Shown here piece by piece: positions 1 through 56,049 of a DNA stretch of 64,000 nt. The DNA comes from Selaginella moellendorffii (taxonomy: Eukaryota; Plantae; Lycopodiophyta): positions 3,679,138 to 3,743,137 of the forward strand of contig NW_003314267.1 in assembly GCF_000143415.4 (NCBI RefSeq), in the 5' to 3' direction. Positions within the stretch are counted from its first letter, which is position 1, and each line of letters starts with the position of its first letter. The position numbers and the translations under genes are program-made. The notes beneath the pieces were generated by a model. The model was not told the origin of the DNA, searched no databases, and was given only the letters and a program-made list of their open reading frames with translations.

Positions 1-439
<439 letters not shown>

Positions 440-676: not shown

Positions 677-725
677 CAACGGCTACAATTTACTTGTGGC
701 CGTTCACAGTGGTCCGAGCTTATAA
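677..725 (+). promoter_or_regulatory. MSA-like (MYB3R) elements and TATA-like box of cyclin B
   Basis: CAACGGCTA at 677-685 and inverted TGAACGGCCA at 697-706, then TTATAA at 720-725. AACGG-core MSA elements are the established G2/M elements of plant B-type cyclin promoters. Confidence 0.65.
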
Positions 726-819
726 TTCTATTGTGTGTGTTCTAGGGCTCCTCCTCGTTTCTCTCTCTCTCTCTCGCCATAGCCAGGGCTCCCATCCATC
801 GATCGATCAGGCAAAGAAG

Positions 820-2386: not shown

Positions 2387-2802
2387 GGCTAAGTTAAAGG
2401 AAGGAAATCTCCCCCAGTCACACAAGTGAGGTAACTCTCTCTGGATTTTTTTTGTTAGATCGAAAGACGTTTGAGAGCATTCCTTTTTAACGGTAATGTT
2501 TGCGACAGTGGTGACAGACAACGCTCGAAAAGTCGTCACACGCGAACGAGAGAGGAGGAAAGCTCAAACAAAGAACAAAAGAAAAGAAGAGGAGAAGCCG
2601 CGCTGCTTAAGCTACTGGCTTGCTGCTGTAAGTAGAGAGATAGATCATAGATGATAGAGTGAGAGAAGATCATTGAGAGAAATCTTTACAGTCCCTTGAG
2701 CGCTCGCAAAGAGAGAGAGCATGGAGGCCATCGACATTGATTGTCATTTTTAAAAGCTATTTAAATCTATCTTATTTGTTCGCAAAGAAAGAGAGAGATT
2801 GG

Positions 2803-3452
2803 CTATGGTGGTGGTGGTGGCGCCGCTGGTGGTGGAGGAGGAATAGTGGCGTTGGATGATGAAGGCACCGCCGCTGCTCCCGCCGCTCCTTTGCCGCTGC
2901 TACCGCCGCCTTTCTTCTTGGCAGGAGGAGCTTTGTTCTTGTTTCCAAAGATGTTCTTCTCACGCGCGGCGGCCTCGGCGTACTCTGTGAAGCTGTCCCT
3001 CCGCCGGTGGAACTCGTAGGATTTCTTGTCAAGCTGAAAGATAGACGATGGATCGCACTGGTAAGAAGAGCTTTCGATCGATCGGATCGGATGATTGATC
3101 CAATAGATCGATTGAAAACGAGAAACAAGCTAGGATAATTGGGGGAGAAGTAATCACCAGTTCTGGCTTGTACTGGAAATTCTCGTGCGTGAAGCTGATG
3201 GGTTGCCGCTTGGGGATCACGTAGCCGGCATTATGCTTCTTCCAGAGATTCTGCAAGCGCGAGGATCGATCGATCCGGGAAGGGGATTTCCCGGACGATC
3301 ACTGCTGCAGGGTTTTACAGGGGTTTTGGCGAGAAATCTAGACTTACGATGGAGAGCTCCCTCACGAGCTTGCACGTTGCCTCGTTGCGCGTCGTCCACG
3401 CGTTGGCGATGACGGGCTTGCGCTCCTCGCCCTTCTTCTCATCCCCGGCCAT
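2803..3452 (-). CDS. Uncharacterised 142-aa protein, 3 exons (not recovered as one ORF in the track)
   Basis: Exons 3452-3348, 3250-3158 and 3033-2803 with phase-0 GT-AG introns give MAGDEKKGEERKPVIANAWTTRNEATCKLVRELSI-NLWKKHNAGYVIPKRQPISFTHENFQYKPEL-LDKKSYEFHRRRDSFTEYAEAAAREKNIFGNKNKAPPAKKK...PPPPP*. Confidence 0.8.
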
Positions 3453-3656
3453 CGCGCGGGATTTTAGAGCTGCGAGAAGGCCACATCACGCGCCAACGGT
3501 CGCCACGGCGGCAAAGAGACGTGCCACCTGTATGCCATAAAGCCGTACACGTGGTGGCCTAGCAGCCGTTGGATATCGATAGATTTGCTAGAACCCTAAG
3601 CCGCCGAGAGTGAGGAACCCTAGCGGCGTCGGAGCGAGTAGGCGAGGCGCGATCCC
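3453..3656. promoter_or_regulatory. Short bidirectional promoter between the 142-aa gene and RPL7A
   Basis: About 200 bp between divergent ATGs. CCAACGGTC at 3493-3501, G-box CACGTG at 3548-3553, inverted TCCAACGGCT at 3564-3573, telo-box AACCCTAA at 3592-3599. Confidence 0.55.
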
Positions 3657-4837
3657 ATGGTAAGCTCAGTGCGATCGAATCGGTCCTAGCTCGCATTTCT
3701 TACGCTGGCAATGCAGGCTCCAAAGCGGGCAGGAGGGAAATCGGCCGTGGCGGCGGCGCCTGAGAAGAAGAAGGTGAGTCGAGAGGATGGTGATTTTGCT
3801 GGAGCTGAGGGTTTTCTTCTCGGGCTGTATAGGCGGAGAAGGTTTCAAATCCGCTGTTCGACAGGAGACCGAAGCAATTTGGCATCGGTGGTGCTCTGCC
3901 GCCGAAGAAGGATCTCCACCGCTTCGTCAAATGGCCAAAGTATGTGAGGATCCAGAGGCAGAAGCGTGTCCTCAACCTCCGATTGAAGGTTCCGCCGACG
4001 CTCAACCAGTTCACGAAGACTCTTGACAAGCATATGGGTGAGATTTTACTGCAATCTTCCTCTTTTCTCTAGCTCTCGTGGATTGATCTTCGTTCTTCTG
4101 TTTTGGTCGTCAGCTACCTCACTGTTTAAGATGCTACTGAAGTACAGGCCCGAGGACAAGGCCGCCAAGAAGGAGAGGCTGCTCAAGAGAGCCGAGGCTG
4201 AGAAAGAGGGCAAGGCGATCGATTCGAAGAAGCCTTTGGTCGTCAAGTATGGACTGAATCACGTAACTTACCTCATCGAACAGGTAGGAGTTTTCTCGTT
4301 TTTTATCCTGGATCTGGTTCTTACTCCTCCCTTCACATCGTTCTTCGTTTTTTTCCTCCACAGGGTAAAGCGCAGCTGGTTGTGATCGCCCATGATGTGG
4401 AGCCGATCGAGCTCGTGCTTTGGCTGCCGGCCCTGTGCAGAAAGATGGGCGTTCCATACGCAATTGTCAAGGGCAAGGCTCGGCTCGGTGCGGTGAGTGA
4501 TCTTCTCCCGGTTTCTAGCACTCCAGTTTCTCACACTCTTCCGTCTCAGATCGTTCACTCTAAGACTGCTACCTGCCTGTGCCTCACATCCGTCAAGAAC
4601 GAGGACAAGCACGAGTTCAGCAAGATCGTCGAGAGCGTCAAGGTCTGGATCTTTTTCTCTCGTTTTGCTGTGATCCTCATCACCACTTCTTCGTGCTCCA
4701 AATAGGCCAACTTCAACGATCGCTTCGACGAGTTCCGGAAGCAGTGGGGCGGTGGCGTCATGGGTGTCAAGTCCCAGGCCAAGCTCAAAGCCAAGGAGAG
4801 GCTAATGGCCAAGGAAGCTGCCCAGAGAATGTCCTAG
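3657..4837 (+). CDS. RPL7A: 60S ribosomal protein L7a (eL8)
   Basis: ATG-only first coding exon (3657-3659), then APK..., [77 protein letters not shown]. Confidence 0.97.
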
Positions 4838-4981
4838 AGAAGAAAATATAACTTTGGCACGTACTTTTTTGTCCACCACCTTTTTTGAAGCTTAATCTAA
4901 AGCCCTAATATGGTCTACTATGATTTATGATTAGGGTTCTTCCAAGATTAGGGGTTTGGGAATCTACCACCTTTTCCAACG

Positions 4982-5680
4982 ATGGGAGAACCCAGGAATG
5001 ATGCAGACATCCAGGCTTGGATCGATGCCATGGATGCTGCACTGGAGAGGATTGGGGACAACAAAGGGCCAGTTTTTGTAACGGATGGAGTGCCCAGGGA
5101 TAGATTTCTCAAGATGTACATGGAGACCCGGGCATACAAGCGAAACATGCTGTGGAAGTCTGGATCGCTGTGGATCCAGGCCGATAACACGGATCATCAC
5201 GAACAGGTAAGGTGCTGGCTCTCCGCCAAGCTGCAACTGGAATTCCAGCGGCTGGGGATCGTGTTCCTCGGGAGGAATCGCCAGGTCTCGCTCTCTCAGG
5301 GGGGATTGATGGAGATTGGCGACGATCGCTGCCAGCAAGTGGATGTCTCCGTGCTGGAGAAAGATAGCAGCGAGCGAAAGGTGGTCTTGGCGGCGCAAGT
5401 TGTGTATAAGAACGAGGATCCACGGGCTGTTTTCGATGATATGGAGGTGCTGGTTAGCGAGCGAGGCGGCGCAAAGGTTGCTTTGGGGATTGTTGTGCAC
5501 GAGCGAGATCCTTGCGTTGTGTACTACCGGGACAGGAAGTCGGCCGAGACGCAAGTGATCCAAGCGATCGATGGAACCGTCCTGAGATTCAAGTGGGAAG
5601 AACTTTTTGATAAAGTTCATGTCCAAGGAGAGACTGCTCTAGATCTGGGATTGCTCACGGATCACGCAACTTCCGTCTAG
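4982..5680 (+). CDS. Intronless 232-aa protein, probable degenerate Uma2-like PD-(D/E)XK-fold protein
   Basis: Clean ATG-to-stop ORF preceded by telo-boxes. Motif order GSLWI..HHEQV...QQVDVSV...VVLAAQVVYKNED resembles the Uma2/REase pattern H...PD.S...hhEV.yS. Family call by eye only. Confidence 0.55.
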   Translation: MGEPRNDADIQAWIDAMDAALERIGDNKGPVFVTDGVPRDRFLKMYMETRAYKRNMLWKSGSLWIQADNTDHHEQVRCWLSAKLQLEFQRLGIVFLGRNRQVSLSQGGLMEIGDDRCQQVDVSVLEKDSSERKVVLAAQVVYKNEDPRAVFDDMEVLVSERGGAKVALGIVVHERDPCVVYYRDRKSAETQVIQAIDGTVLRFKWEELFDKVHVQGETALDLGLLTDHATSV

Positions 5681-5877
5681 ATTTCCAATCGAGTTTTAAC
5701 TTTCTTTCTTTGTAGACGCCAACGATCGCTAGATCCATGATCTTCTATAGCAGTTTTCCCGCATAGAATACAATCACTCTTAACACTATCGCTAAAGAGA
5801 GAACGAAGAACTTACGAGATGTTTGATGCTGTATATATTTGGCGGTGGAGATTATTTCTTTCTTGGTACAGTGCTTG

Positions 5878-7601
5878 CTACCTAGTGCGGCCCCGTCTCC
5901 TCAAGAAGCTAGGAATCTCTAGCGTGGCTCCACCATTGTTTCCCAACGGCGATGCGATGGAAGGTTTGCTACGTGGGCTTGGGCGAGTGAGTTGCTGCCA
6001 AAGCTTGAGATATCAGGACACTAGAAAGCAGCAGATGCGAAGAACTTACTTGCACGTCTGGTTCTTCTTGCGACTTGAATCCAGTTGCAATAAGCGTGAT
6101 GCTCACCTGGTCAAAGGATGGAATTATGATACCTATGTTGCACAAGCAAACTTACATGACCGTTGAAGGAATCGTCGACAACAGCACCGAATATAAGATT
6201 TGCATTCGGGTCTACAAGATCGTATATAACCTCTGCTGCCGCGTTCACCTGTTTATGAAATGGTTGCAACATAAAAAGAAGAAAACTAAAGCGTACCTCA
6301 AACAGGGTCATATCGGTTCCTCCAGTGATGTTCCATACAATGCCAGTGGCACGCTCAATTCCCACATCGAGTAACGGCGACTGGATGGCATTCAGAGCGG
6401 CGTCTCTGGCCCTGGACTTCCCTGTAAGTTTGTCTCTAGCTCTAAGAAAGAAAACAGCAATGCATCAAGACGCAGCACCTGTGGCAGTTCCAATTCCCAT
6501 GAGCGACGACCCAGCATTGGCCATGATGGCACGAACATCCGCGAAATCAACATTCACTAGTCCAGGGATCTGAAAAACAAACCAAAAGTTAGCGAGAAAC
6601 CTTTACTTTGGAAAAGTTCAATCACCGTTATAATGTCCGAAATACCACGGACACCTTGCCTCAGGATATCATCCGCAAGGTTGAAAGCCTCGGTCACAGG
6701 CGTGGACTGGGACACGGCAGTCAAGAGCTTGTCGTTTGGAATGGTGATCAGAGTGTCCACATTGTTCTTCAGCAGAGCCGTTGCCTCTTGTGCCTGTATC
6801 GATCTTCGACGGCCCTCAAACGAGAAAGGAGTGGTAACAATACCAACTGTGAGCACTCCCAGCTCCTTGGCCACTCCCGCAATCACTGGAGCCGCTCCAC
6901 TGCCAGTACCACCACCCATCCCAGCCTGAAAAGCTTGACGAAATCAGCACAAGCAGACACAGGAAGAACACACAACTTACAGTGACGAACACCATGTCCG
7001 CTCCACGAACAGCTTCCTCGACTATGGCTTTGCTTTCTTCCGCGGCGCTCATGCCAATCTCCGGGTTTCCACCAGCACCCAATCCTCTCGTGAGCTTCTG
7101 TCCAATCTGTAGCCTGTTTTGCGCTGGAACTGGCGACATCGCCATCGCCTGTGCGTCCGTGTTGACGATCCAAAACTCCACGCCTTTCATCTCGCTCTGC
7201 ACCATCCGGTTGACGGCATTGGATCCACCACCGCCCACTCCAATGACTTTGATCTTGGCCTCGTTAAATCTCTCCATCTCCAAGTTTCCTTCCCAGGAGA
7301 CCGATGTAGAGGAATTCCCCGTGCCGCTGCTGCTGTTCGCGAGCTCGCGCGACGAAAACTCCGACCTGGAGGTCGCCAGAGCACCTCCATCACGATCCCA
7401 CTCCAGATCCCAGCTCGGGGATGCTGCTGCCGACGAATACGAGCATTGGAATGCAGGTCTGCTCCTGCTGGCGATCAAAGACCTACGCCTGGCTCTAGTG
7501 CCGATCGCGAGCTGTGTGCCCTGCTCCCCCAATTTTCTTGGAGAAAGGAGGTCAGTGCCGGGCAGAGAAGACGAGGACGCTGAGATTACCGCAAGAGCCA
7601 T
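5878..7601 (-). CDS. FTSZ2: Plastid division protein FtsZ2
   Basis: Ser-rich transit peptide; [42 protein letters not shown]; C-terminal core peptide [10 protein letters not shown] typical of FtsZ2. Confidence 0.96.
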
Positions 7602-7799
7602 GGCGATCCACCTCTCGAACAAGATTCTAGCCTACAGCAGCGTGATCCCTACCACAATTCGACGAAATGCGGGCGCGTGATCGCCTCCAGCTCCCCGCCA
7701 TCGCCCCAGGAACCCTAAACCTCTTTTCAAGAGGAATCTTTAACTTATCCGCTGGGAATCTATCCTGCCATCGCGATCGTTCATTGATTTAAAAACTCC

Positions 7800-7823
7800 T
7801 GGCCGTCCATCATACAACGGCAA
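7800..7823 (+). promoter_or_regulatory. MSA-like element upstream of kinesin-14 (divergent from FtsZ2)
   Basis: CAACGG at 7815-7820 plus a variant GGCCGTCC, about 140 bp upstream of the ATG. Fits G2/M regulation of mitotic kinesins. Confidence 0.4.
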
Positions 7824-7955
7824 CCTTCCCGCTGGAATTTTGAAAACCAGAGTATCGTTCAAAGAATATTCTCGCCCTAGCAGGAGGCGAGTGTTCTTCG
7901 CTCCCCATGAGCTCTTCATCTTGATCTCGAGGCGGGGAGCTGAAAGATTGGAGGA

Positions 7956-10900
7956 ATGAAGGCGGCGATTCCATCGGCGAGGCTGCGCGAGCGGGATTCG
8001 TCAAATGTATGTGTCGATTTGAATTTCTCGTGTTCCCTGATCGTGGCGCTGTGCTGCAGAAGGAGAATGAGCCGGATGTGCCGGCTGGGAAGAAGCGTAA
8101 GCTCGGAATTTCAAGGGAGCCAGCAGCTAGAGCTCCGCGAGAAACCCTATCGGCGCTCAATGTACCCAGAGAGTCCATCGCTTCCATTCAGGCAAGCAGC
8201 GTTCCAGCAGTCCCATCGACTGTCAGCTCGGGCCAAGTGGAATGGGAAGGAGTGGCTCGTATGGCCAGTGACGAAGTGGAGGCTTTGCTTAATACGAAAA
8301 TGGCTGGGAAATCTAAGTTCGACCTCAAGGTACGATTTTTTCTTCTCTTTTTCTTCGCTTTGTCACACCTATTTTCTGCCGTGTGATCGTCAGGGAAGGA
8401 ACGAGAAAATGATGGAGTACATAAAAAATCTAAGGACGTGCATTCGCCAGTTTTTACAAGTAGAGAGTGTCTATGTAATGCAGCAGGAACAGGCCCAGAA
8501 TCAGATCAAGGAAGAGAAGCAACGGCACGAAGAATCAGGTAAGTCTCTTATGTTGTGTTCCAGAGCAAGCAAGTTGAGATGTTTTCTTTTTAACAGAGCA
8601 AAAGATGTCCGCTAAGTATGGTGAATTGGAGGCTAAACTCGTAGAGGCTCGGCAACAATATGATAGACTTGTAGGACAGTTTCAGAAGCTAGAAACTGAG
8701 AAGCAGGTTGGAATCAATTCACGCTGATTTCTGGTTAATATCATGTTCAATAACTCAGGAACTTTCACTGGCTCACGCAAAGGATGTGGAGGCGCTGGAA
8801 GTAGCTTCAGAAGAACGCACGAAGTTGAATGAAGAGATTGACAAACTTCAAAAAGAAGTCGCCCAGTGTAATCATCAGGTTAGAGATATTTCTTACTCCT
8901 TGGTTGTTGCTAAATAGCAATCTCTGTTCTTTCAGCTGGGAACAGCGCAGGACGTGAACAGGCGATTGCAGGAGTATAACACGAGTTTGCAGCTTTATAA
9001 CAGTAAACTACAAAGTGACGCGGCTTTGGCTACCGAAGAAAACGCTAAGACGCAGAAAGAGAAGGCAGCTATTGTGGAAACCTTGGGCGCCTTGCGTGGA
9101 AATTATGCTGGTTTACAAACTCAACTCGAAACAGCAAAGGTAGGTCCCTTAAGATTGTTAAAGATTTTGCGTTCAACGTGCTTGTTGCAGGATGCTTTGC
9201 AAGCTGAAACGGCCAAGATGAAGTCAATAAATGACGAACTTTCTCTTTTGCGGGCGGAGCTCCTTCGTGTTTCAGAAGAAAGGGACAACTATTACCATCA
9301 GGTTCAGGCATTGTCAGCTGAAAATGCAGCAATCAGGGAAAAAACTTCAACATCTGCCGCTGAGATTATGCGCTTCACGAGCAAGGCAGAAGCGTTGGAG
9401 GTATTTAAGACGTTCTTTTACGTACTTCATAGTAACCCTTTGTTCAGGAAAGCTACGACAAGCAAGCGGAGCAGATCAGACTCCTTCAAAAACAACTCAA
9501 CCGGTCGAAGGAGATGCTAGAGGTAAAATGTATGCTGCTTCTATCTACTTAAGCTGATGGATCAGGTTGCGGAAAAATCATTGTCTTTCGAGAGGATTGG
9601 GAGCAGTGAATATATGTCAAAAATTGAAGCCCTTGAGAACAAACTTGCTGACGCAGAGCAGCAGCTCCGTGAGGGAGAGATGTTGCGGCGCAAGCTTCAT
9701 AACACCATCCAGGTTCGCACTTTTCTGTTTTTATCACCTAAGGCAAACAGTGATGTTACAGGAGCTGAAGGGGAACATTCGTGTATTCTGTAGAGTAAGA
9801 CCACTTTTACCCGATGAAAACGACGAATCATCGACTCTGATCAGCTATCCAGGCGAGGAGGGAATTGAGCTACACCAGGCTCAAGGTAAATTTATCTGTA
9901 TACATGCAGCTGCTTATCTGTTTCTTTAGGCCAAACATACTCGTTTTCTTTTGACAAAACTTTTGGACCCGACGTTTCTCAGAGAGACGTGTTTACTGAG
10001 ATTTCACAGCTCGTTCAAAGCGCCTTGGATGGCTATAAGGTAACACCTTTTCTTTTGTTGGCATTCTCTGTTTACCTTGTCCTTGTAGGTTTGCATATTT
10101 GCGTATGGCCAAACTGGATCGGGCAAGACACACACTATGATTGGACAGCCAGATGACATGGACCAGAAGGGTGTGATTCCCAGGTCTTTAGAGCAGATCT
10201 TTCAGTGCAGCCAAGCACTTCGTTCGCAAGGATGGAGCTTCAAAATGCAGGTCAGCACAAAGTTTGTTTCTTTTCGTAGTGGGGCGATTTATTCGTTCTT
10301 TTTCCAGGCTTCACTTCTTGAGATTTATAATGAAACTATAAGAGATCTTCTTGCGCCGTCAAAAAGCGTGGGTGGGGACACGACCCCAGCAAAGCAGCAC
10401 GCAATAAAGCACGAGCCAACTGGGAATACCGTTGTGACCGAGCTTACTGTCGTGGAAGTTAACAGCTGGGAAGAAGTGTCATCCCTTTTGAGGCAAGCTG
10501 CACAAAGCAGGTAAAAGAAATTTGGTTTGGCAATCTCTCGGTAGCAGACTGACCGAGCTGTATCATTGGCAGGACTGTAGGGAAAACAGCTATGAACGAC
10601 AGGTCCTCTCGAAGCCATTGTGTATTCACGCTGCGGATCATAGGATCGAATGAGGTAGTCATTGTTTTCACTGATACGAAGAATGATTTCTTTCTTTGTG
10701 TGTGTGTGTAGAATACTGAGCAACAGGTACAAGGAGTTCTCAACCTGATCGACTTGGCTGGAAGCGAGCGCCTCTCGAAAAGCGGCTCCACCGGCGAACG
10801 CCTGAAGGAAACACAGGTACTAATCCAAGTTTGCGAGTATTACTCTAACAAGAGCGAATCACTGTCGCGCAGGCCATAAACAAGAGCTTGTCTAGCCTCG

Positions 10901-11197
10901 GAGACGTGATCCTTGCGATTGCAAACAAAGACCCTCACATCCCATATAGAAACTCAAAGCTGACTTATCTTCTCCAGGTAAACTCTTACATACATTTGTG
11001 CAAGTGCTTACTGTGTGATCAAAACGCAGCCTTGCCTTGGTGGCGACTCGAAGACGCTGATGTTCGTGAATATCTCCCCCGACTCCAAATCACTCCATGA
11101 GTCGCTGTGCTCGCTGCGGTTTGCAGCCAAGGTGAATGCATGCGAGATTGGAGTTCCCAGGAGGTACACGAGCAGCAGGCCTCAAATTAGCTGTTGA
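7956..11197 (+). CDS. Kinesin-14A (C-terminal motor; ATK1/ATK5/Ncd-like), multi-exon
   Basis: N-terminal tail with KKRK, long coiled coil, neck [24 protein letters not shown]-loop [46 protein letters not shown]. Confidence 0.95.
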
Positions 11198-11804
11198 AGC
11201 TTTTGGTATTTTGTTGTCAAAGTTTTGCATTGACAAGAAGAAAAATTTATGTGGAACCAAACAAGAATATATATGGAAACCTTTGCCACCTTTTACTTGG
11301 ATTTTTTCAGATGGAGTACAAGCCGGCATGAAAGACTGATTGTAGAACTAACTAACGAAGATCAAGCTGTCAAGTTATTCGCTGTTAAGTTGGAACGGGA
11401 ATATGCTTGGTGGATGAGGAGTCTCTTCCCCAATATGTTACAACATATTGTCCATGAAGATGGAGAGACGCTTCCCAAGCTCACCAGAAAGGTTATGGAA
11501 ATTTATCCTTTGCAAATTCAAGCCAAGAAGCAGCTTGACTTCTCCTGCACGTTTTGCAAAAGATGATGATGAAGAAGACAATACAATTATATTTGAAAGC
11601 GAAGAAGTCTGAGTGTTTTTCTATATTCGATATATAATAAAAACCGATTTTGACTCATATCAGTTGTGTTAGTTGCGAGAACAACACAAGCTGATGTAGT
11701 ATGATTAAGTACCATCATACTACAGCAGATTGACTTGTAGCAACTAATACCGTTGCTCGCTTGCCCAGCATCAAGGCTCAGGCAGAGACTAGGGGGCAGC
11801 CCCT

Positions 11805-11920
11805 TTACCGAGATCCTCCCAGCAGGTCAACCAGGCATGCCAAATGGTATCCCCCAGCCTCCATCCCAAAGTCCTGGACCACTGCTCTTCCCAGCATCCC
11901 GGCATGGCTGCACGCCTTCT
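11805..11920 (-). pseudogene. PLS-PPR gene fragment in the left foldback arm (mirror copy at about 13010-13115, +)
   Basis: ACSHAGML...VQDFGMEAGGYHLACLVDLLG matches the L2/S2 PPR consensus ACSHAGL...M..DYG..P...HY.C.VDLLG. Confidence 0.75.
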
Positions 11921-13170
11921 TCTTATAAAACATCATTGGGATGTTGATCAATCCCTTCTTCTTTGTTTTCTTGGATGGAGCACTGATGAGTTGAGGCAGC
12001 AACATGGAGGTGGTGATCGTCATAGATCTGCTCCAAGGGAAGTGCAGGAATATCCATTGAATATCTAGTGTACACCTAAACTAGGTTCCGAATAGGCACT
12101 GTTGATCAATAGCACATCCAAACCATCTAGATATACCTGTTGTGTAGGAAGGCACATGCAAGCAAGGAGGCAATGGTGTGTGTGGCAGCCGTGTGGTGGC
12201 AGGCAATGAGGCAATGAGTTCTCTAGTGCCAGGCAAGGCAATAGTTTCAAGGCTAGGCAAAATGACCAAATAAGTGATTGCTGGTAACAATTCAAATGTG
12301 CTCACTTAACTTGATAATAGTCTTTCTTTGTCCCAAGCATACAGCGATAGTGCCTTTGCTTACAAGTTAGGCGTTTTGGGGTGGGAGAGGTTGTATCAAG
12401 AATTTCAGTACGTAGAAAAAATCTACACCTTCACCCTAGCTGCTAGTCCACTCTCTTCTAGGTAGCATAGATTTTCTTCAGGTACTAAAATTCTCGAGCC
12501 TCTCCTGCCCCAAGACACCCACTTTGTAGACAAAAACACCATTGCTATATGCTTGGGACAAAGAAGAACCATCATCAAGTCGAATGTGGATTGTTGCCGA
12601 CAATCGCCTACTCAATCTTTTTGCCCAACCCTAGAACCATTGCCTTGTTGTTCTTCTTGCCTAATGCCAAAGGGCTTATCGCCTCCTTACCTACTGCTAC
12701 ACGCCACCATCACCTCCTTGCCTTCACACGCCTTGCTCGATGAACCTCTCCCACCTCTCTTCATCATACCCTATCTAGCCCTAGTTCTTCAGCCGAAGAA
12801 GCAAGAGCCTTGGTATATCTAGACGGCTGGGATGTGCTGTTGATCAACGGTGCTGATTCGATTGGTTTAGGTGTACACTGGATATTTGACAGATATTTCT
12901 GCACTCCCCTTGGAGCACATCTGTGACGATTGCCACCTCCATGCTGCTGCCTCGACCTTCTTTCTCATCAGTGCTCCATCCAAGAAAACAAAGAAGAAGG
13001 GATTGATCGACGCCATGCTCGGATGCTGGGAAGAGCAGTGGTCCAGGATTTTGGGATGGAGGCTGGGGGATACCATTTGGCGTGCCTGGTTGACCTGCTG
13101 GGAGGATCTCGGTAAAGGGGCTGCCCCCCTCGTCTCTGCGTGAGCCTTGATGCTGGGCACACGAGCAACG

Positions 13171-13252
13171 GTATCAGTTGCTACAAGTCAATCTGGTGTA
13201 GTATGATGGTACTTGATCATACTACATCAGGTTGTGTTGTAGCAACTGATAC
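13171..13252. ncRNA. Candidate pre-miRNA-like hairpin (82 nt) nested in the foldback
   Basis: GTATCAGTTGCTACAA-GTC-AATCTGGTGTAGTATGAT, loop GGTACTTG, ATCATACTACATCAGGTT-GTG-TTGTAGCAACTGATAC: a 16-bp perfect stem plus an 18-bp stem with two G:U pairs. Expression unknown. Confidence 0.45.
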
Positions 13253-13929
13253 AAGTTCTCGCAACTGACACAACTGATACGAGTCAAAATCCGTTTTCAT
13301 TATATATCGAATATAGAAAAACGCTCACACTTCTTCGCTTTCAAATATAATTGTATTGTCTTCTTCATCATCATCTTTTGCAAAACGTGCAGGAGAAGTC
13401 AAGCTGCTTCCTGGCTTGAATTTGCAAAGGATAGATTTCCATCCTTTCTAGTGAGCTTGGTAAACATCTCTCCATCTTCATCTTCAAATGCTTGGACAAT
13501 ATGTTGTAACTATTGGGGAAGAGACTCCTACCAGGTGAACAAAGTGGTGATTAGTCTTGTTGCGGGGGGGGCAAGAGTGTGAGCTACTGGATCGCATGAG
13601 GAGTGTGTATGGGGTTGACATAGATTTGCTGCCTTCTCAGCCCAAGAGATACCTGTATTATGATGTAGTCTCGGATGTAGTAATGTGACCGTGATAGTTC
13701 CTAGCCAAAAGGCAAGCCTTTGTAATCTTGTTTTGGAGAAGGGTCCAGTGTTTTGTGTGCAATGATAGCAACTGAGGTTGGCACTGGCAAATCTTGCAAC
13801 ACTTAAACTCAGGAATTATTCCATGAATTTGCAAAGCTGGTGGGATGTTAATGAAGAGCTTAAACTGGTGCAAACTTGGTGATGTTGAAAGAATTGTCTA
13901 CAGCTTGAGCAATTGAGTTTAGTTGCGGG

Positions 13930-14760
13930 GTTCAGGTCCGCTGCTTAGCCCGAGCAACCAGCGATTTTCCAAGATCACCACCTCACCATTGCTGCTATCC
14001 ACTACGTTGGCAAATTTCGAGAGGGCCCTTCTCCAGGTAAAGAGATTTAATGGTCTATCATGTTGTTTCATCCATACAGCCCGGGACTTCTTTCAGTTGA
14101 GAGCTGATAATCTCGTCCATTATATCCTCGAGGCTCTAGGAGACTGCGTTCCAAAGGTGTGAGATACGTATGTTTCTAGCGTTGACAGGGTGATTGATGT
14201 CACAGGATGGACGGTGAAGTTCAGGAAAAGAAACGAGCTTTGAGTTGACCAATTGACTTGGAAGGAGTTCGAGGTGTTCCAGCACACCAAGATCAACAGC
14301 ATGATGGTGGTGGTTCACAACGGATGGGTCTACACCGCTGGGGCTGCTAAGACCAGGGTCGTCATGTCCAGAAGCTTCAAGCCCGTTCAGACACACATGA
14401 AAATCTCAATGCTACGTCACACAGTTCCTGAAGCGAAGAACACATCCGGTACCATTTCCACAAGGTACTAGTGTTTACTTCAAATTAACGAAATGCCAGA
14501 TTCACTAACTATTGTATGAATTCCAGGAACGCATACAGGAGGATGATACGTATGTAGCGCGGTTCAGACCATATATGGACCATCCTCCACTGGAATGACG
14601 CTTTTATACCAGTGTTACAAACCCGGATAGATGAAGTGGTTTGTGTTTTACCAATGTAATTCTTTTGGTTTCTATCAGGATCTGGTGGAGGCTTGGAAGG
14701 CGATACATGGACCACAGCAAAATCATCGTCGTAATCACTCTCTGGAAGAATGCGCATTTA
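13930..14760 (+). pseudogene. Degenerate PP2C-fold gene, copy 1
   Basis: Exon fragments LRADNLVHYILEALG, SMMVVVHNGWVYTAGAAKTRVVMSRSF and DHSKIIVVITL resemble PP2C motifs (V..I....LYVANAGDSRAVLSR; DNITVIVV). Frameshifts and stops are present. Confidence 0.55.
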
Positions 14761-15315
14761 CTCAAGGCTGCCTGAGGTGTTGAAAACAAACTTGACATCA
14801 GTAATGTTATACAACATTAATGTGAAAACCTTTGCATACAAGAGGTTGATGACTGCGGATATTAGTAAGCAAATTACTTATCAGATTCTTTAATTCTTAC
14901 GTTCTTTGACGACAGATTCATTCGGCGAAGGGACTGAACCTCAGATCATCAATGATTTCCTGCGCTTCTTGTTACCGTGGGAGTTCTTTCAGCAAACACT
15001 TTGGCAACGTGCGTGTGCATTCTGTGTGATCAGTGAATGGCAAGCAAACTCCTGAACCCCAAACGTCTTCAAACTATTACTCGTTTGGGATTATATAGAC
15101 GCCCTGTGGAGAGGATGCGCTCCAGGTTTCAACATCTCCCATCTCTGCATGATTAGGCTTTGTAAAGTTACAAGAAAGATAGTCTATGTATGCCAGTAAT
15201 TTAAATCAAGTGCCTGTGAACTATGATTTACCACCGATTGCATGGCTCCATGCATCCTAGATCTTACATAAGACCTCTTCAAGCTCCAAGCACGATTACA
15301 ATTAACTCATTGATC

Positions 15316-15440
15316 ATGAAGGCTGATTTGGTGTTTCTCGTTTTGGTATTTGCCACTTTGCAGATTGTGTCGTCTACTTCGGGTACATTGCCTTTGGATG
15401 CAGATGATATTGATGTTGAGGTCTTTCCAAAGAGACTATT
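15316..15440 (+). pseudogene. Secreted-peptide precursor, 3'-deleted copy
   Basis: MKADLVFLVLVFATLQIVSSTSGTLPLDADDIDVEVFPK: signal peptide plus acidic segment. Paralogous to 21639-21861. Confidence 0.45.
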
Positions 15441-15530
15441 GACTTTGAAGGCGTGGTGCCGTATCGGCAGCAGGAGCCAATCATCCCCTTGTGGCGAAGA
15501 AGTGTTTGAATTGAACCTTCGGAACAAATA

Positions 15531-16874
15531 TTATTTACAAACTGACTTAAGAAATGGATGCTTCAAAGCTTCATCAGGAGTTATTCGCTTACTGGGATCC
15601 AGCGTAAGCATCCTCTCTAACAAGTTCTTGAATCTCGCCATCAGCGCTCCATCTTCCCCTGTAAGATCTGAAATACAACTTGTCTTAACATTGAAGGACG
15701 CCATACTTCTCAGAGTTTCCAGCTTTGTCACGGGATCTAGCTGCCGGAACTCAAAGTTCTCGTTGAAATGCATGCCCGTAAACGCTCCTTTCTTCAACAT
15801 CGCCTTTGGAAACGCCCCCTTGAGCTCCATTTGCTGCTTGAGAAGCCCGTTGTTAGTAGCAACAGGAAAGAGGAACTTGCCCGTGTAGAGCTCATACAAG
15901 CAGCAGCCGGCAGACCACATATCGATTGCGTGGCTGTAGGGAGCCACCCCGAGGATGATCTCCGGTGCCCGGTAGCTCGGACTCACCAGGTATGGGGTCT
16001 CCGCGGACGGGGTTTGATCCCTCGCAAACATGGCCACCCCAAAGTCGCACAGCTTGATCGATCTCCGGGACTTTGTGACCATGATGTTGTCAGGCTTGAT
16101 GTCGCAGTGCAAGATGCCGCAATGGGCCAAGTGCTGGAGGGCAACCATGAGCTGGTGAGCATAGACACAGATGGTTTTGAGATTGATACCTCTGTTTCGC
16201 CCGTACTTGTTTGTGATCTGCCGGAGGTTTAGATCCAGGGACTCCATCACCAGGCACAGATGCTCGCGATACACAAAGCTGTCGAGGAGCTTCACGCAGT
16301 GGTTGTCTTTGTTCGTGGCCTCCGGCTCCGCCACCTTTTTGAGGATCTGGAGCTCCGACTTTGCAGACCGGAGCATGAGATCGTTCTTCCGGGGGATCTT
16401 GATGGCAACCTCCTGCTCGCACTCTGGGAAAAGGGACTTGGCCAGGAAAACCGTGGAGAACATCCCGCTTCCTATGGATGCCTTCACCTGGTATTTGGAG
16501 TTGATTGTCTCGCCAATTCGGGCCTTGTAGTAGAACTCGTGATCGTGCCAATTGTCGGGGTTGTCGTTCCTTAGCCCTTGGACGGAAGCCTCCGGATTTG
16601 TAATTTCTGCGAGTGGCGTCTCCGAGAACATGTCTTGAGCTGGAGGGCTCGATGATTTGTCGCAAGAATTACTGGCGATCTTGGCAGTGTCATGAGGAAC
16701 TGGGTTGCCGAGAGAAACACTCTGCTGTTCTATTATTTGTCCTTCTTCTAGTGCATGCTTCTCCAGGATTGCCTGTCTCCTCTTCCTGCTTTCCTCTCTA
16801 ACTCTTTCCACCATTGCATCTTCGTCCTCTACTACACTTATCTGGCAGTCTTCGCTCCTTCTTTTCCGACCCAT
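15531..16874 (-). CDS. PRP4-type (CMGC/DYRK group) Ser/Thr kinase, intronless, copy 1
   Basis: REESRKRRQAILEK, DNWHDHEFYY (cf. PRP4K DNWDDAEGYY), GSGMFSTV, VAIK, LHCDIKPDN, DFG, TPYLVSPSYRAPE. First ATG at 16874. Confidence 0.9.
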   Translation of the reverse strand: MGRKRRSEDCQISVVEDEDAMVERVREESRKRRQAILEKHALEEGQIIEQQSVSLGNPVPHDTAKIASNSCDKSSSPPAQDMFSETPLAEITNPEASVQGLRNDNPDNWHDHEFYYKARIGETINSKYQVKASIGSGMFSTVFLAKSLFPECEQEVAIKIPRKNDLMLRSAKSELQILKKVAEPEATNKDNHCVKLLDSFVYREHLCLVMESLDLNLRQITNKYGRNRGINLKTICVYAHQLMVALQHLAHCGILHCDIKPDNIMVTKSRRSIKLCDFGVAMFARDQTPSAETPYLVSPSYRAPEIILGVAPYSHAIDMWSAGCCLYELYTGKFLFPVATNNGLLKQQMELKGAFPKAMLKKGAFTGMHFNENFEFRQLDPVTKLETLRSMASFNVKTSCISDLTGEDGALMARFKNLLERMLTLDPSKRITPDEALKHPFLKSVCK

Positions 16875-17518
16875 GTCCAAAGGGTTTTGCCAACCCTATT
16901 TGTAAAGGACAAATTTATACTTGGGCAATGATCCTCCGACTTTGAAATTTAAGCGGGAAAATTTGTGGCCATGTCTAGGGCTATGGCGAGCGCATATCGA
17001 TTGTGCGCCCCCAAATTCTCGAGCTATGGGTATGATCGTGCTTCTTCGCTGTAGAGCTGGATTGCCACGGATCTTGTGTCTTTCTAGGAGGCGCCATAAT
17101 ATCTTTCTCGTGCTTGGTAGATTGGGGGGGATTCCGTGCTGTCCCGGATCTGGAACAAGGAGCTTGAGGTAAACGTCATCTCGCGGTATCGCTACTGGGG
17201 TGAAAGAAATCTCTCGCTCTTGTGTCAGGCTGGGCATACTGCTCGAGGTGTTCTTGCTTTAAACTTATTTTCGTTTTTATGAGCCTCTTACATATATCCT
17301 GGGAAGTCCAGGGCGAAAGCTATACCGATTCGAGGTACGAGTTTATTTTTCAGAAGAAAGAATTTCCTCCCAGAGTTTTTAACGTCTTGGGACTCGCCGT
17401 CTCCAAAGCGGCTAAATCCTCGCGAGTTCTCTTGTCGCCCAGACAGGATCTTTGCTTTGAAAGTCTGCAAAATAATATGGTGAGTGTTTTTACACACTGT
17501 TTGTGGTATGGTGAGAAC

Positions 17519-18643
17519 TTACCTCGAGGACTCCTTGATGCAGGCGTTGAGTTCTTGGTTCTCCGGGACGATTTCGAAGTTCTCACTCTCTTGATCGTAC
17601 GTGACACTTCGAAATGAATCAGCAGTCAAGGAGTAGAAAAAAAGGACCCCGATTCCTGCTCGAATCCCAATGTGACTGCTGCTCAGGTACTTCTCCATGT
17701 CTGGTGGCATTTGGCAAAGCCGGATCCACTTAGACTTCTCCAGGTCGAGCGTGTATATGACGACGTGGGTTTCTGGTCCTGGCTTGCCTTTCTCGAGAAC
17801 GAACTCATCCTCGCATGTTGTGGCAGCCACGAGAGAGCCGGATGAGGAGGAAGCGATGAGCGGACCATGCGAGACGAAGACATGCTCGGAGAAGGCATCG
17901 GTGTTGATCTGCTTGGTGCTCCACTCCAAGGTGTTGGCGTCCAAGGCATAGATGGTCTCGCCAGCGTCTTCAAAGCAAGAGAAATAGAAAGCGCTGGGGC
18001 CGATCGCGCTGGTGAAGACCTCCGGATCGTCCAGCACAGGACCGCCGCCTGGTGTGTTTCCGTCGCCGATTGCAGTCCACGAAGGCCGATCGCAGCCATT
18101 GCGGATCGCCAGAATGCCGCTCAGCCTCCTTCCCGCCTTGTCATCGCTCGTGTCCATCCATTCTTCCGACTCCTGCGAGGCAGCAACCGCGACGAACACT
18201 CCGGGTCCCGGATCCTTGTCACGGTAGGAGATGCTGTTCGGGATAGCCGGGAAGAGTCCGGCCAGGCAGCCGGAGGTCGGAGAGTAGAGCACTGCGAACC
18301 GATTTGGGCGGAGCCACAAGAAGTTGTCCTGGTCCTTGAGACAGCACCCGGGAAGAGCGATGGAGACAGTGGCCGCTTCCGACGCGTCCGGTCCTTCTTT
18401 TTCTTCGTCTCCGGCGACCATTTCCAGCTTGTACCAGGAACGCAGTACCGGATCAAACGCGAAGACACACTGGAAGCTTGGGCCGTGCACTTGCATCCAG
18501 GTTTCACAGGGATTCTTGGGCTTGAAGCTCGAGCTGCGGAGGAGCGACCGGATTCGCCTGGATACTCCGGAGAGTTTCGCCTGTGTCCCAAAGGAAGCGG
18601 ACGAGAAAATCTTGCGGAGAATGTCTCGAGGTAACTCTTCCAT
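17519..18643 (-). CDS. F-box protein with probable kelch/beta-propeller-like C-terminus, intronless
   Basis: N-terminal F-box LPRDILRKIFS...LSGVSRRIRSLL; recurring YxxD...W blades (AFDPVLRSW, YALDANTLEW, YTLDLEKSKW). Confidence 0.8.
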   Translation of the reverse strand: MEELPRDILRKIFSSASFGTQAKLSGVSRRIRSLLRSSSFKPKNPCETWMQVHGPSFQCVFAFDPVLRSWYKLEMVAGDEEKEGPDASEAATVSIALPGCCLKDQDNFLWLRPNRFAVLYSPTSGCLAGLFPAIPNSISYRDKDPGPGVFVAVAASQESEEWMDTSDDKAGRRLSGILAIRNGCDRPSWTAIGDGNTPGGGPVLDDPEVFTSAIGPSAFYFSCFEDAGETIYALDANTLEWSTKQINTDAFSEHVFVSHGPLIASSSSGSLVAATTCEDEFVLEKGKPGPETHVVIYTLDLEKSKWIRLCQMPPDMEKYLSSSHIGIRAGIGVLFFYSLTADSFRSVTYDQESENFEIVPENQELNACIKESSR

Positions 18644-19009
18644 TAAAGGTCGTGCCCTTTTTTTTAACTTTCACTTGACATTTAAACGTTAAGCTCCGGA
18701 GGCGATGACGCTGACCATGAAATGCTGTGCGAGCCAAGCACCTTAGCAGCTTACTCAAGCAGTTATCCAGATGCTTCGTTCGACGATCTCGACGCTGTGA
18801 CAACGAAAGCAACTTGGTCGATGCAAAACGAACACTCGACACTATACTATTAAGAAGACTTTCCTTGCCAGTCTGCTCGCGGCTCTGCCCAGGTACTTTT
18901 CTCATCGACAACTCTCTGTCGCTTATAATGCTTCAGTCTATTTCCAGAAGCTGGGCTCACCTTGAGAAGCTGCGCTCTCGTAGAATCTCTGGCGGTCCAA
19001 GGAGGTTCT

Positions 19010-20508
19010 ATTGACTCTGTTCTGGCTAATATCATGTTCTATAACTCGGGAACTTTTCACTCGCTCACGCAAAGGATGTGGAGGTGCTGAAAGTAGCACG
19101 CACGAAGGTTTGACCAACTTCAGAAAGAAATCGCCAGTGTAATCACCAGGTGAGAGATATTCCTTTTTCCTTGGTTGTTTGCTGAATAACGGAACAAGGC
19201 AGGATATAAACAGGCGATTGCAGTATAACACGAGTTTGTCAGCTTTATAACAGTAAACTACAAAGTGACGCGGCTTTGGCTGCCGAAGAAAGGAAGACGC
19301 AGAAAGGGAAGGTGCTTGCGTGAAAATTATGCAGTTTGTTAAAGATTTATGTTCGACGTGCTTGTTGCAGGATGCTTTGCAAGCTGAAGATGAAGTCAAT
19401 AAATGACGAACTTTCTCTTTTGCGGGCGGAGCTCCTTCGCGTCTCAGAAGAAAAGGACAACTATTACAATCAGGTTCAGGCATTGTCAGCTGAAAATGCA
19501 GCAATCAGGAAAAAACACTTCAACATCTGCCGCTGAAATTATGCGTTTCACGAGCAAGGTAGAAGCGTGGAGGTATTTAAGATTCTTTTACGTACTTAAT
19601 AGTAGCCCTGTGTGCAGGAAAGCTACGAAAATTAAGCGGAGCAGATCAGACTCCTCCAAAAACAACTCAATCGGTCGAAGCAATATGCTGTTTCTATTTA
19701 CTTAAGCTGATGGATCAGGTCGCGGAAAAATCATTGTCTTTCGAGCAGTGAATATATGTAAGCAAACTTGCTGACGCGGAGCAGCAGATCTGGGAGGGAG
19801 AGATGTTACGCCGCAAGCTCCAAAACACCATTCAGGTTGGTACTTTTCTGTGTTGATCTTCTAAGGCACACAGTGGTATTTCAAGAGCTGAAAGGGAACA
19901 TTCGTGTATTCTGTAGAGTGAGACCACTTTTACCCGATGAAAACGACGAAACATCGACGCTGATTCGCTAGGGAATTGTTCAAGGTAAATCTATTTGTCT
20001 GTATTACATGCAGCTGCACTTGTCTCTTTAGGCCAAACATACGCGTTTTCTTTCGAAAAAGTTTTTGGACCCGACGTATGTCAGAGAGACGTGTTTACTG
20101 AGATTTCACAGCTCGTTCAACAAAGCGCCTTGGATGGCTATAATAAGGTAACATCATTTGTTGGCATTCTCTGTTTACCTGTTCCTTGCAGGTTTGCATA
20201 TTTGCGTATGGCCAAATTGTATCCGGCAAGGCACACACTAAGGCTTTTCACTGTATATGAAACCATAAGAGATCTTTCGCCCCAGCAAAGCAGCACGCGA
20301 CCAAGCACGAAGGAATACCGTTGTGTTTGAGCTTACTGTCGTCTGCAGGTAAAGTAATATCCTTTGGCAATCTCTAGACGTTGGCAGGAAAAGAGCTATG
20401 CTTCTCGAAGCCATTCATAGGAAAGAATGAGGTATTCATTGATACGAAGGATTTGTGTGTGTAGAATGCTGAGCAACAGGTACAGGGAGTTCTCAACCTG
20501 ATCGACTT
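19010..20508 (+). pseudogene. Deletion-condensed kinesin-14 pseudogene fragment
   Basis: Collinear with 8717-10756 including introns ([36 protein letters not shown]), with many small deletions, frameshifts and stops. Confidence 0.93.
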
Positions 20509-21240
20509 GTGTTATGTTTGGTTCCATGCAGCGCGTGAGCTATTTGAATTGCGAGCTCACAATCTTGTCCGTTACGTCGTCGATGCTCTAGGGACCAACA
20601 TTGGGCAGGAGGATATCAAGCCCGCTCTAGAGGCTGCGTTCCAAAGGTGGCAAAATCTTGAGATACGTATATGCTTTTGGTTGAATTGAATATATCACAG
20701 GATGGACGATGAAGTTCAGAAAGAGATGCGAGCTTTGCGTGAGTCAATTGAGGTGTTCCAGCACACCAAGATCACTAGCATGGTGGTGTTGGTTCATAAT
20801 GGATGGGTCTTATACGCCGCTGGGGCTGCCAATGCCAGAGTCGTCATGTCCAGAAGCTTCAAGCCCGATGATAATGCGCCAAGTGCGGACAATCGCAATG
20901 CTAAGTTACACAGTTCCTGAAGGCGAAGAACACATCTTGTACCATTTCCACAAGGTACTAGTGGTTACTTTAAATGCTAGATTCACTAACTTTTGTATGA
21001 ATTCCAGGAACGCATACAGGAGGACGAGCGCTCGCTTCGGATCATATATGGACCCTTCTTACGCTTTTATACCAGTGTTACAAAACCGGATAAATGAAGT
21101 GGTTTGCGTTTTAGCACTGTACTGCCATGTAATTTCTTTTGCTTTGTGGAGGCTTGCAAATCTATAGCGGGGCGATACATGGACCACAGCAAAATCAGCA
21201 TCGTAATCACTCTCCAGAAAATGGACATTTACCCAAGGAT
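20509..21240 (+). pseudogene. Degenerate PP2C-fold gene, copy 2
   Basis: Collinear with about 14060-14790; ALEAAFQR/MDDEVQKE, SMVVLVHNGWVLYAAGAANARVVMSRSF. 5'-truncated by fusion to the kinesin fragment. Confidence 0.6.
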
Positions 21241-21638
21241 GAGGGAGGTGTTGAAAGCAAACTTGATATCAGTAAGCTATCTGATTTTGATGTCTATTTT
21301 GCATGTTTGGATATTAGTAAGCAAATTACTAATCAGATTTCTTTAATTCTTGTAACCGCGGGGTAAGCTTCTTATTAGTAAACATTTTCTCAGCGTGCGT
21401 GTGCATTCTGTGTGATCAGTGAATGCCAAGCAAACTCCTGAACCCCAAACGTCTTCAAACTATTGACGCCCCGTGTGCGCTCCAGGTTTCAACATTTAGG
21501 CTTTGTAAAGTTACAAGAAAGATAGTACCTTAAAATAAGTGAACTATGATTTACCACTGACTGCAGGGTTGCATCCATCCTAGATCTTATATAAGACCTC
21601 TCCAAGCTCCAAGAACGATTAAAACTAAGCCATTGATC

Positions 21639-21861
21639 ATGAAGGCTGTCTTGGTGTTTCTCGTTTTTGTATTTGCCACTTTTCAGATTGTGTTGTCTAC
21701 TTCAGGTACAATTGTCTATGGATATTGATGTTGAAGTCTTTCCAAAGATGGATGATGATTATGAGAATGAGCAATGGGGCAAGCATGGGAAGAACACTAA
21801 TAATAATAACAACATCAAGATCAAGATCAATTTCTGCAAGAACCAAGTATATAGATCATAA
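21639..21861 (+). pseudogene. Secreted-peptide precursor, frameshifted copy
   Basis: MKAVLVFLVFVFATFQIVLSTSG, then a frame change to DIDVEVFPKMDDDYENEQWGKHGKNTNNNNNIKIKINFCKNQVYRS*. TATATAA about 50 bp upstream. Confidence 0.45.
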
Positions 21862-22034
21862 AGACAAAATGTACTAATTGCCTGAAACATGAATATTAAT
21901 TGTTTCTTGAGAATCTGACCATTGACTTTGAAGGCGTGGTGCTGTATCTTGGTGGCCTTCGAAGGCGTGGTGCCAATCATTCCCTTGTGGTGAAGAAGTG
22001 TTTGGATTGATCATCACATCCTTTGGAACAAATA

Positions 22035-23378
22035 TTATTTACAAACTGACTTAAGAAATGGATGCTTCAAAGCTTCATCAGGAGTTATTCGCTTACTGGG
22101 ATCTAGAGTAAGCATCCTCTCTAACAAGTTCTTGAATCTCGCCATCAGCGCTCCATCTTCCCCTGTAAGATCTGAAATACAACTTGTCTTAACATTGAAG
22201 GACGCCATACTTCTCAGAGTTTCCAGCTTTGTCACGGGATCTAGCTGCCGGAACTCAAAGTTCTCGTTGAAATGCATGCCCGTAAACGCTCCTTTCTTCA
22301 ACATCGCCTTTGGAAACGCCCCCTTGAGCTCCATTTGCTGCTTGAGAAGCCCGTTGTTAGTAGCAACAGGAAAGAGGAACTTGCCCGTGTAGAGCTCATA
22401 CAAGCAGCAGCCGGCAGACCACATATCGATTGGGTGGCTGTAGGGAGCCACCCCGAGGATGATCTCCGGTGCCCGGTAGCTCGGACTCACCAGGTATGGG
22501 GTCTCCGCGGACGGGGTTTGATCCCTCGCAAACATGGCCACCCCAAAGTCGCACAGCTTGATCGATCTCCGGGACTTTGTGACCATGATGTTGTCAGGCT
22601 TGATGTCGCAGTGCAAGATACCGCAATGGGCCAAGTGCTGGAGGGCAACCATGAGCTGGTGAGCATAGACACAGATGGTTTTGAGATTGATACCTCTGTT
22701 TCGTCCGTACTTGTTTGTGATCTGCCGGAGGTTTAGATCCAGGAACTCCATCACCAGGCACAGATGCTCGCGATACACAAAGCTGTCGAGGAGCTTCACG
22801 CAGTGGTTGTCTTTGTTCGTGGCCTCCGGCTCCGCCACCTTTTTGAGGATCTGGAGCTCCGACTTTGCAGACCGGAGCATGAGATCGTTCTTCCGGGGGA
22901 TCTTGATGGCAACCTCCTGCTGGCACTCTGGCAAAAGGGACTTAGCCAGGAAAACCGTGGAGAACATCCCGCTTCCTATGGATGCCTTCACCTGGTATTT
23001 GGAGTTGATTGTCTCGCCAACCCGGGCCTTGTAGTAGAACTCTTGATCGTGCCAATTGTCGGGGTTGTCGTTCCTTACCCCTTGTCCAGAAGCCTCCGGA
23101 TTTATGATTTCTGCGAGTGGCGTCTCCGTAAACATGTCTTGAGCTGGAGGACTCGATGATTTGTCGCAAGAATTACTGGCGATCTTGGCAGTGTCATGAG
23201 GAACAGGGTTGCCGAGAGAAACACTCTCCTGTTCTACTATTTGTCCTTCTTCTAGTGCATGCTTCTCCAGGATTGCCTGTCTCCTCTTCCTGCTTTCCTC
23301 TCTAACTCTTTCCACCATTGCATCTTCGTCCTCTTCTACTCTTATCTGGTAGTTTTCGCTCCTCTTTCTTCGGCCCAT
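22035..23378 (-). CDS. PRP4-type kinase, intronless, copy 2
   Basis: Near-identical intact paralogue of 15531-16874; most differences are in the N-terminal part. Confidence 0.9.
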   Translation of the reverse strand: MGRRKRSENYQIRVEEDEDAMVERVREESRKRRQAILEKHALEEGQIVEQESVSLGNPVPHDTAKIASNSCDKSSSPPAQDMFTETPLAEIINPEASGQGVRNDNPDNWHDQEFYYKARVGETINSKYQVKASIGSGMFSTVFLAKSLLPECQQEVAIKIPRKNDLMLRSAKSELQILKKVAEPEATNKDNHCVKLLDSFVYREHLCLVMEFLDLNLRQITNKYGRNRGINLKTICVYAHQLMVALQHLAHCGILHCDIKPDNIMVTKSRRSIKLCDFGVAMFARDQTPSAETPYLVSPSYRAPEIILGVAPYSHPIDMWSAGCCLYELYTGKFLFPVATNNGLLKQQMELKGAFPKAMLKKGAFTGMHFNENFEFRQLDPVTKLETLRSMASFNVKTSCISDLTGEDGALMARFKNLLERMLTLDPSKRITPDEALKHPFLKSVCK

Positions 23379-24127
23379 GTCCAAAACCTAGGGCTTTGCT
23401 TCCTTTTATTTTCCTTTTTGTTAAGGACAAGTTTATTCTTTGACATTATATACTACAATGAGCAAGATATCCACCTGATTGGGGAGCTCCTAGGTCACAC
23501 TATTGCAGCTAAATCTGAAGCGTTCGCTCCAGGAAGTTTTGATTGTGTGCAACAGAGTATATGTCAGTTTTCTCAAGAAACTGATAGAATTCATGTGTGC
23601 GAAACACGTGAATATTCCTGCCTGTTATATTTCTCCTTTGAAGTGAGCGAACACTTAAAGATTTGTGTGCAAACAAAGAAACGAAGTAGCTCATAGTCTC
23701 TCACCTGGGGTGGATATCCTGTACACTGCCGAAACCTGACAGGACTTCTCATACGTTCTGGGGCGAAACACAGTGTCAACCGGAGCCACTCGTTCATTGA
23801 TATCCTTTTATTTTTGACAAATTCTCAGGAGAGTAACTTTGTCACGAGTTTCTTGAGGCCAATCTTAGAGGTATATTTCATGTGATCGTTGTCACAGACA
23901 CGAGATCATCGAAACGGAACAGCCAATTATTATTGGCTCACATTCCTGGCGCGAGAGGTTGGGGAACCACGAATAATTTTAAAAATCTTTTAAAGGTCAA
24001 GCCCTAGAAAAGCCCTAAGAATGTACTTTAGGGTTCTTCGTGGCGTGGGCTCGCTCCAGATGATTCGTTTGTGAGGTATTGGCCTAGATCTTCGCTCTCC
24101 AGACGCTAGATCTCGGGGGATCTGGCC

Positions 24128-30108: not shown

Positions 30109-30432
30109 TCATTCTGAACAGGTTATAGAGAAGCTGAGAAATGGAAACCCCCAGTCCTGACATTCTTCGTAAGTTATGGGCTCAGGTAGACCTCCACAAT
30201 TTGGTTGTACGAAAATATCAATGAGATTCCCATCGAAGTGAATCTTGTAACTTTGAACTCCTTCTAGAGTCTGGCACTGACCACAACTAGAATACTTATC
30301 AATTTGCTCATCACAACCTGATGCAGCATACGTAGTGATGGTGGTGTCAGCTCCCACACTCCCAGTAACCAATGCAATCACAACTATGATGAACGGGATC
30401 ACATATACACTAGCCTTGAGCACTCCAGCCAT
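30109..30432 (-). CDS. MiAMP1-like (beta-barrelin) secreted Cys-rich peptide A, 107 aa
   Basis: Signal peptide; six-Cys pattern GC....YSSCGQC...Y...FDG....F....C.G.......C..WGF..SF.I.C like MiAMP1; TATA-like motif upstream. Confidence 0.8.
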   Translation of the reverse strand: MAGVLKASVYVIPFIIVVIALVTGSVGADTTITTYAASGCDEQIDKYSSCGQCQTLEGVQSYKIHFDGNLIDIFVQPNCGGLPEPITYEECQDWGFPFLSFSITCSE

Positions 30433-56040: not shown

Positions 56041-56049
56041 TGATCGTGG

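Follow-up and report, generated by a model that had tools for sequence, protein, structure and literature searches.

A MiAMP1-derived fold-back in one haplotype of Selaginella moellendorffii as a candidate proto-MIRNA

Within a 64,000-nt stretch of Selaginella moellendorffii DNA (hereafter the window; host record GL377571.1, GCA_000143415.2), an 82-nt hairpin, referred to here as copy 1, is most probably (about 60% in our estimate) a proto-MIRNA-stage fold-back of gene origin, now silent or almost silent. Silence is favored because copy 1 is uncovered in four RNA runs and because both hairpin copies of the window are missing from the other haplotype, scaffold GL377582.1, from which a piece with the peptide cluster (L001) and a piece with the hairpin region (L002) were compared. 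The locus illustrates how a plant microRNA gene is born, and its source pseudogene, intact potential target, decayed copy, and empty allele all lie within 30 kb. For now, the hairpin counts as material from which a microRNA could form, and not as a demonstrated regulator. The features of the locus are collected in Table 1.

Table 1. Features of the hairpin locus and of the MiAMP1-like gene cluster, in window coordinates.
Feature	Position	Strand	Description
2.1-kb inverted duplication	11417..13529		arms 11417-12137 and 12812-13529, 83% alike; holds both hairpin copies
Sister hairpin, copy 2	11666..11750		16 nt of the B-matching arm deleted; 4 substitutions
Core hairpin, copy 1	13171..13252 (GL377571.1:3692308-3692389)		82 nt
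Other arm	13171..13213	-	sense copy of a pseudogene C-like fragment, loop included
Arm segment	13228..13252	+	24/25 nt identical to the peptide B CDS; candidate guide when read on the minus strand
Upstream DNA	13265..13560	-	about 72-75% alike, in blocks, to DNA upstream of pseudogene C
TATA-like box TATATAA	13300..13306	-	candidate element; the stem begins about 40 nt downstream
Peptide A	30109..30432	-	intact 107-aa MiAMP1-like paralog
Pseudogene C	about 35530..35740	-	MiAMP1-like copy, 5'-truncated and frameshifted; nearest relative of the hairpin source
Peptide B	41295..41618	+	intact 107-aa MiAMP1-like gene; predicted target
Predicted target site in B	41404..41428	+	same sequence in both haplotypes

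The original prediction described an 82-nt stem-loop, and folding agreed with it. The plus strand of the core gives a single stem-loop of -54.7 kcal/mol (z -12.6, with 0/200 shuffles as good), and the minus strand, likewise a single stem-loop, reaches -43.8 kcal/mol (z -11.1). Among 90-nt windows of the 64 kb the hairpin is the most stable, although its GC content is only 39%. The predicted extent holds for the core, but the stem itself continues imperfectly to about 13160-13264. Plant MIRNA criteria (PMC12594335) call for a hairpin of 50-300 nt with a 20-24-nt duplex, no more than five mismatches, and no asymmetric bulge above 3 nt. The same criteria call for a single-stranded RNA precursor and, on the side of expression, for at least 10 miR/miR* reads with 2-nt 3' overhangs, at least 75% of them from one duplex; cleavage opposite guide positions 10-11 is optional support. 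Copy 1 has the structural features on either strand and copy 2 is borderline; the duplex of the guide that starts at 13249 has three mismatched positions and no bulge. As a putative precursor defined by the structural criteria, copy 1 is not filed here as a plant MIRNA. The term proto-miRNA used in the original prediction fits the modeled hairpin, but the accompanying claim that it regulates a defence-peptide family is unsupported.

The pairing with peptide B on which the prediction was built was reproduced in each of its details. The 24/25 match between the arm segment and B has a BLAST E-value of 6e-6 within the window. Candidate guides were ranked by a position-weighted target score, in which a lower value means better pairing. 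Against 41408-41428, the plus-strand 21-mer that starts at 13171 has a G:U at position 4 and is mismatched at 17-18 (score 3.0), and the minus-strand 21-mer from 13252 carries the G:U only (score 1.0). Minus-strand 21-mers that start at 13253-13245 score 0-1.5 on both alleles of B with a duplex energy ratio of 1.0, and plus-strand guides score 3.0 or worse. The cut in B is predicted at 41415/41416 for the guide from 13249 or at 41418/41419 for the guides from 13252 or 13171. The identity of the target site across the two B alleles says little, given that they differ at only 9 positions in 324 nt (seven non-synonymous and two synonymous codons). A resemblance to the equivalent sites in A and C had also been proposed. 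The same guides score 3-7 on C and 9-10 on A, which is ruled out as a target. Since A scores this poorly and C is a pseudogene, B is the only credible target among the genes seen.

Both intact peptides belong to the MiAMP1 family by sequence. Peptide B scores 39 bits against PF09117, for which the gathering cut-off is 26, and peptide A is likewise above the cut-off. In this score, in a signal-peptide-like start, and in their six cysteines each, A and B are like the MiAMP1/beta-barrelin peptides, which are antimicrobial; B is a candidate antimicrobial peptide. Both genes are open in both haplotypes, yet absent from the gene tables of both. TATA boxes and AATAAA signals accompany A as well as B. 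Searches with B, with an A/B alignment, and with cluster representatives returned no further MiAMP1 paralog that could be a better source or an additional target, a blank which means only that small MiAMP1-like genes are not in the collections searched.

The source of the hairpin is closest to pseudogene C. The C allele of the other haplotype (L001:14698-14747) aligns with the entire 43-nt arm, loop included (z 11-12). A single 7-nt gap against the C allele is common to both hairpin arms, which are one fragment in opposite orientations; outside the target site, the arm at 13171..13213 equals the C allele at 16/16 positions beside this gap. This alignment was invisible to the original prediction because in the C copy of the window the beginning of the aligned stretch is gone. 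The origin test of PMC1790633 demands that similarity between arms and gene family persist once the miRNA/target part is deleted. With the 25-nt target-like part removed, the arms still align with the C allele at z 8.0 and 5.1 (0/500 shuffles), and the same deletion leaves z under 2 against B or A. Furthermore, in minus-strand reading, the 300-nt flank ahead of the hairpin aligns with the DNA upstream of C with a score of 87 versus 27 ± 4 (0/300 shuffles). Because the arm similarity outlasts deletion of the target site and the upstream DNA is homologous, the hairpin arose by inverted duplication from a C-like fragment, and the proposed birth from the MiAMP1 family has stronger support than the original prediction could give it. 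These alignments show the hairpin locus to be a second copy of the C locus, with the leading ~45 nt of the gene fragment folded back.

The shared upstream DNA and the alignment of the 43-nt arm with the C allele also bear on whether the match to B arose by chance in an unrelated palindrome or a MITE. Apart from the shortness of the match nothing speaks for this, and with an E-value of 6e-6 and the arm homology to the C allele a chance match is excluded. As for a MITE, two hairpin copies occur in the window and none in the allelic loci (two only in ~100 kb examined), and their arms are coding-derived. We give this explanation next to no weight.

At two positions that set C apart, the hairpin carries the bases of B, and where B is the one that deviates it carries the base of C, as expected if it preserves an ancestral B/C sequence. 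In the order of events shown by the comparisons, a segment with the first part of a truncated, MiAMP1-like gene (C lineage) and its upstream DNA was duplicated. An inverted copy of a ~45-nt piece, made about a GTAC centre, next gave the hairpin. Later, the region was redoubled as the 2.1-kb inverted repeat, the second hairpin copy decayed, and the other haplotype lost both. The match to B would then be mostly inherited, with the hairpin keeping the ancestral B/C sequence and C drifting as a pseudogene.

The sister hairpin, which lies in the other arm of the 2.1-kb repeat, had no place in the original prediction. Its core differs from that of copy 1 at 4/66 sites, a rate similar to that of the flanks (4.7%). 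An insertion of 16 nt into copy 1 was considered and rejected; the stem continues beyond these nucleotides, which places the deletion in copy 2. The best copy 2 guide scores 4.0 on B. After the deletion, copy 2 can pair via an upstream repeat, one of its changes is a compensatory C-G to U-A replacement, and two others fall at positions that were already unpaired.

The other haplotype is without the DNA that corresponds to 11333 to about 11765 and to about 12770-14168 of the window, so that both hairpins are absent from it. Short microhomologies mark the junctions. On the right-hand side DNA was deleted, since a paralogous segment still matches 14071-14168, and the left junction is no assembly error, since an RNA contig crosses it.

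The arms of the repeat contain, at 12970-13103 and in the mirror region 11817-11990, short pieces from two or more other expressed genes, and reads and contigs over these regions run on into unrelated sequence; the 2.1-kb repeat is a chimeric, gene-capturing element. Pfam found no match in the pieces of an upstream 'gene X' or in the repeat ORFs. Inverted duplications are frequent in this DNA, which accords with a silent fold-back; two more lie in the window (54095-56020 and 56049-58427), the first in PPR sequence. A tandem segmental duplication at 8714-23440 comprises the 3' part of a kinesin gene and a PRP4-like kinase with an F-box gene between; its copies at 15434-16922 and 21917-23440 are 94% alike.

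Signs of selection were sought in the changes peculiar to the hairpin. The B-matching arm has none in 25 nt and the other arm has three (p 0.12). Between the copies, 3/3 polarisable substitutions and the deletion fall on copy 2 (p about 0.06). Selection on the guide arm or on copy 1 is thus at most weakly suggested by these counts, and neither is significant. The 12-mer at 13185-13196 (minus strand), which carries all three passenger-arm differences, is identical to L001:14790-14801, further along in the C allele. These three changes are possibly a single ectopic conversion event.

To look for transcription, four mRNA-type runs from four studies were mapped on 10700-14300; three of them (X1, X2, and X5) carry this haplotype. 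Copy 1 and its upstream flank (13171-13482) have no coverage in the four runs, a library type which can miss a pri-miRNA. The kinesin exons alongside are covered in 3/4 runs; in X2, a stranded raw run of which the analysis took in 12%, their depth is 11-25. In an index of RNA runs, no run holds the hairpin stretch, and the one match with a small share is the junction of the empty haplotype. An annotated 252-aa model at 13056-14775 (plus strand) was rejected as a host gene; it has no Pfam match, and RNA over 13160-14200 amounts to a read or so. Copy 2 shows a trace of RNA, which consists of one exact 170-nt contig in X5, a run that may hold DNA, and about one minus-strand read in X2.

The centre of the repeat behaves differently from copy 1. 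The segment 12234-12790, the inner palindrome of the repeat, has minus-strand transcripts, with exact contigs in X1 and X5 and a depth of about 18 in the stranded X2. Its minus strand folds to a ~170-bp hairpin with -225 kcal/mol versus -174 kcal/mol on the plus strand, and G:U pairs outnumber A:C oppositions 27 to 14 (p 0.06). A related palindrome is retained in the other haplotype. The segment is a candidate long hairpin RNA that is better supported as RNA than copy 1. One could read the whole 2.1-kb repeat as a long hairpin-RNA or siRNA locus, whose transcript would yield heterogeneous small RNAs, and a few of these, from the intact arm of copy 2 (score 4 on B), could hit B weakly. The minus-strand transcription of the centre (12260-12790), seen in three studies, its ~170-bp fold, and coverage that trails through copy 2 to 11599 agree with this reading. 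However, the RNA covers the left half only, which leaves the long outer arms without a partner, copy 2 has minimal coverage that comes in part from the run that may hold DNA, and copy 2 guides score 4.0 or worse, so we consider such a locus improbable as the explanation of copy 1.

More serious, though still unlikely, is that copy 1 is a working, young, haplotype-specific MIRNA, perhaps limited to a tissue or stress. Pol II would transcribe it from the minus-strand TATA at 13306, DCL1 would process the stem from base to loop, and AGO1 would slice B mRNA with a 21-mer of the 5' arm that starts at about 13249-13245, both ends of which range give a 5'-U. In addition to the structural criteria (PMC12594335) and to scores of 0-1.5 on both B alleles with an energy ratio of 1.0, the lower stem below these guides is 13-17 nt long, near the rule of 15-17 bp for DCL1 (PMC11317159). 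The TATATAA box at 13306-13300 stands on the strand of the near-perfect guides, about 40 nt upstream. It is the sole TATAWAW nearby, against a window rate of 0.46 per kb and strand, and the C locus is without it. The box favors the minus strand as the one that would be transcribed, and is no evidence of transcription in itself. The weak asymmetry of change toward the guide arm and copy 1 points the same way, and miRNA-guided cleavage has been demonstrated in this species (PMC5569507). On the other side, the four runs contain no RNA from copy 1, and one haplotype has lost it. The selection signals are not significant, and the three passenger-arm changes are maybe one conversion event. Nor is the hairpin among the candidates in the accessible part of the PMC5569507 supplements, which cover conserved miRNAs only.

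We therefore prefer the silent or nearly silent fold-back. A minus-strand transcript of it, if made, could be cut by DCL1 to a 21-nt guide, which would slice B mRNA. That an uncatalogued, haplotype-specific young miRNA from a pseudogene of the MiAMP1 cluster already slices the mRNA of its intact paralog B is doubtful. If true, a MIRNA would here be observed while its presence and absence still segregate, and a beta-barrelin defence peptide would be under small-RNA control, of which we found no description. In its wider form, the claim that the hairpin regulates the peptide family went too far; among the genes seen only B has a good site, the other haplotype has no copy of the hairpin, and the four runs contain no RNA of it.

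The hairpin had no counterpart in the resources searched. Rfam 15, at its gathering and E-value thresholds, assigned it to no family, and generic hairpin matches were far below the cut-off. Queries with the guide, passenger, and loop sequences gave nothing relevant in full-text literature and searchable supplements, and a limited literature search found no publication on a miRNA against the MiAMP1 family. Should small RNAs be made from copy 1, antimicrobial peptides would join the defence genes policed by young miRNAs, and the two haplotypes would form a natural plus/minus pair. If none are made, the locus is a further gene-fragment fold-back among the many in the genome.

The mechanism of inverted duplication is long known, and young plant MIRNAs that arose in this manner from target-family genes include MIR161, MIR163, MIR824, and MIR846 of Arabidopsis (PMC1790633). 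Drift and death is perhaps the commonest fate of fold-back loci of this sort (PMC1790633). The hairpin resembles silent gene-fragment repeats and hairpin-siRNA loci in that it sits in a larger, unstable inverted duplication of gene fragments, whereas its core, with a ~45-bp stem and a small loop, is of pre-miRNA size and differs from the long perfect repeats of hairpin-siRNA loci. Unlike the young MIRNAs of Arabidopsis, which have sequenced miR/miR* reads, it is known here from sequence, occurs in one haplotype only, and has a MiAMP1-type peptide gene of a lycophyte as its source. It shares with MIR161, MIR163, MIR824, and MIR846 fold-back arms that resemble a protein family beyond the target site, a low copy number, and restriction to a lineage, and in Arabidopsis, as here, the closest relative of a young MIRNA can be a pseudogene (PMC1790633).
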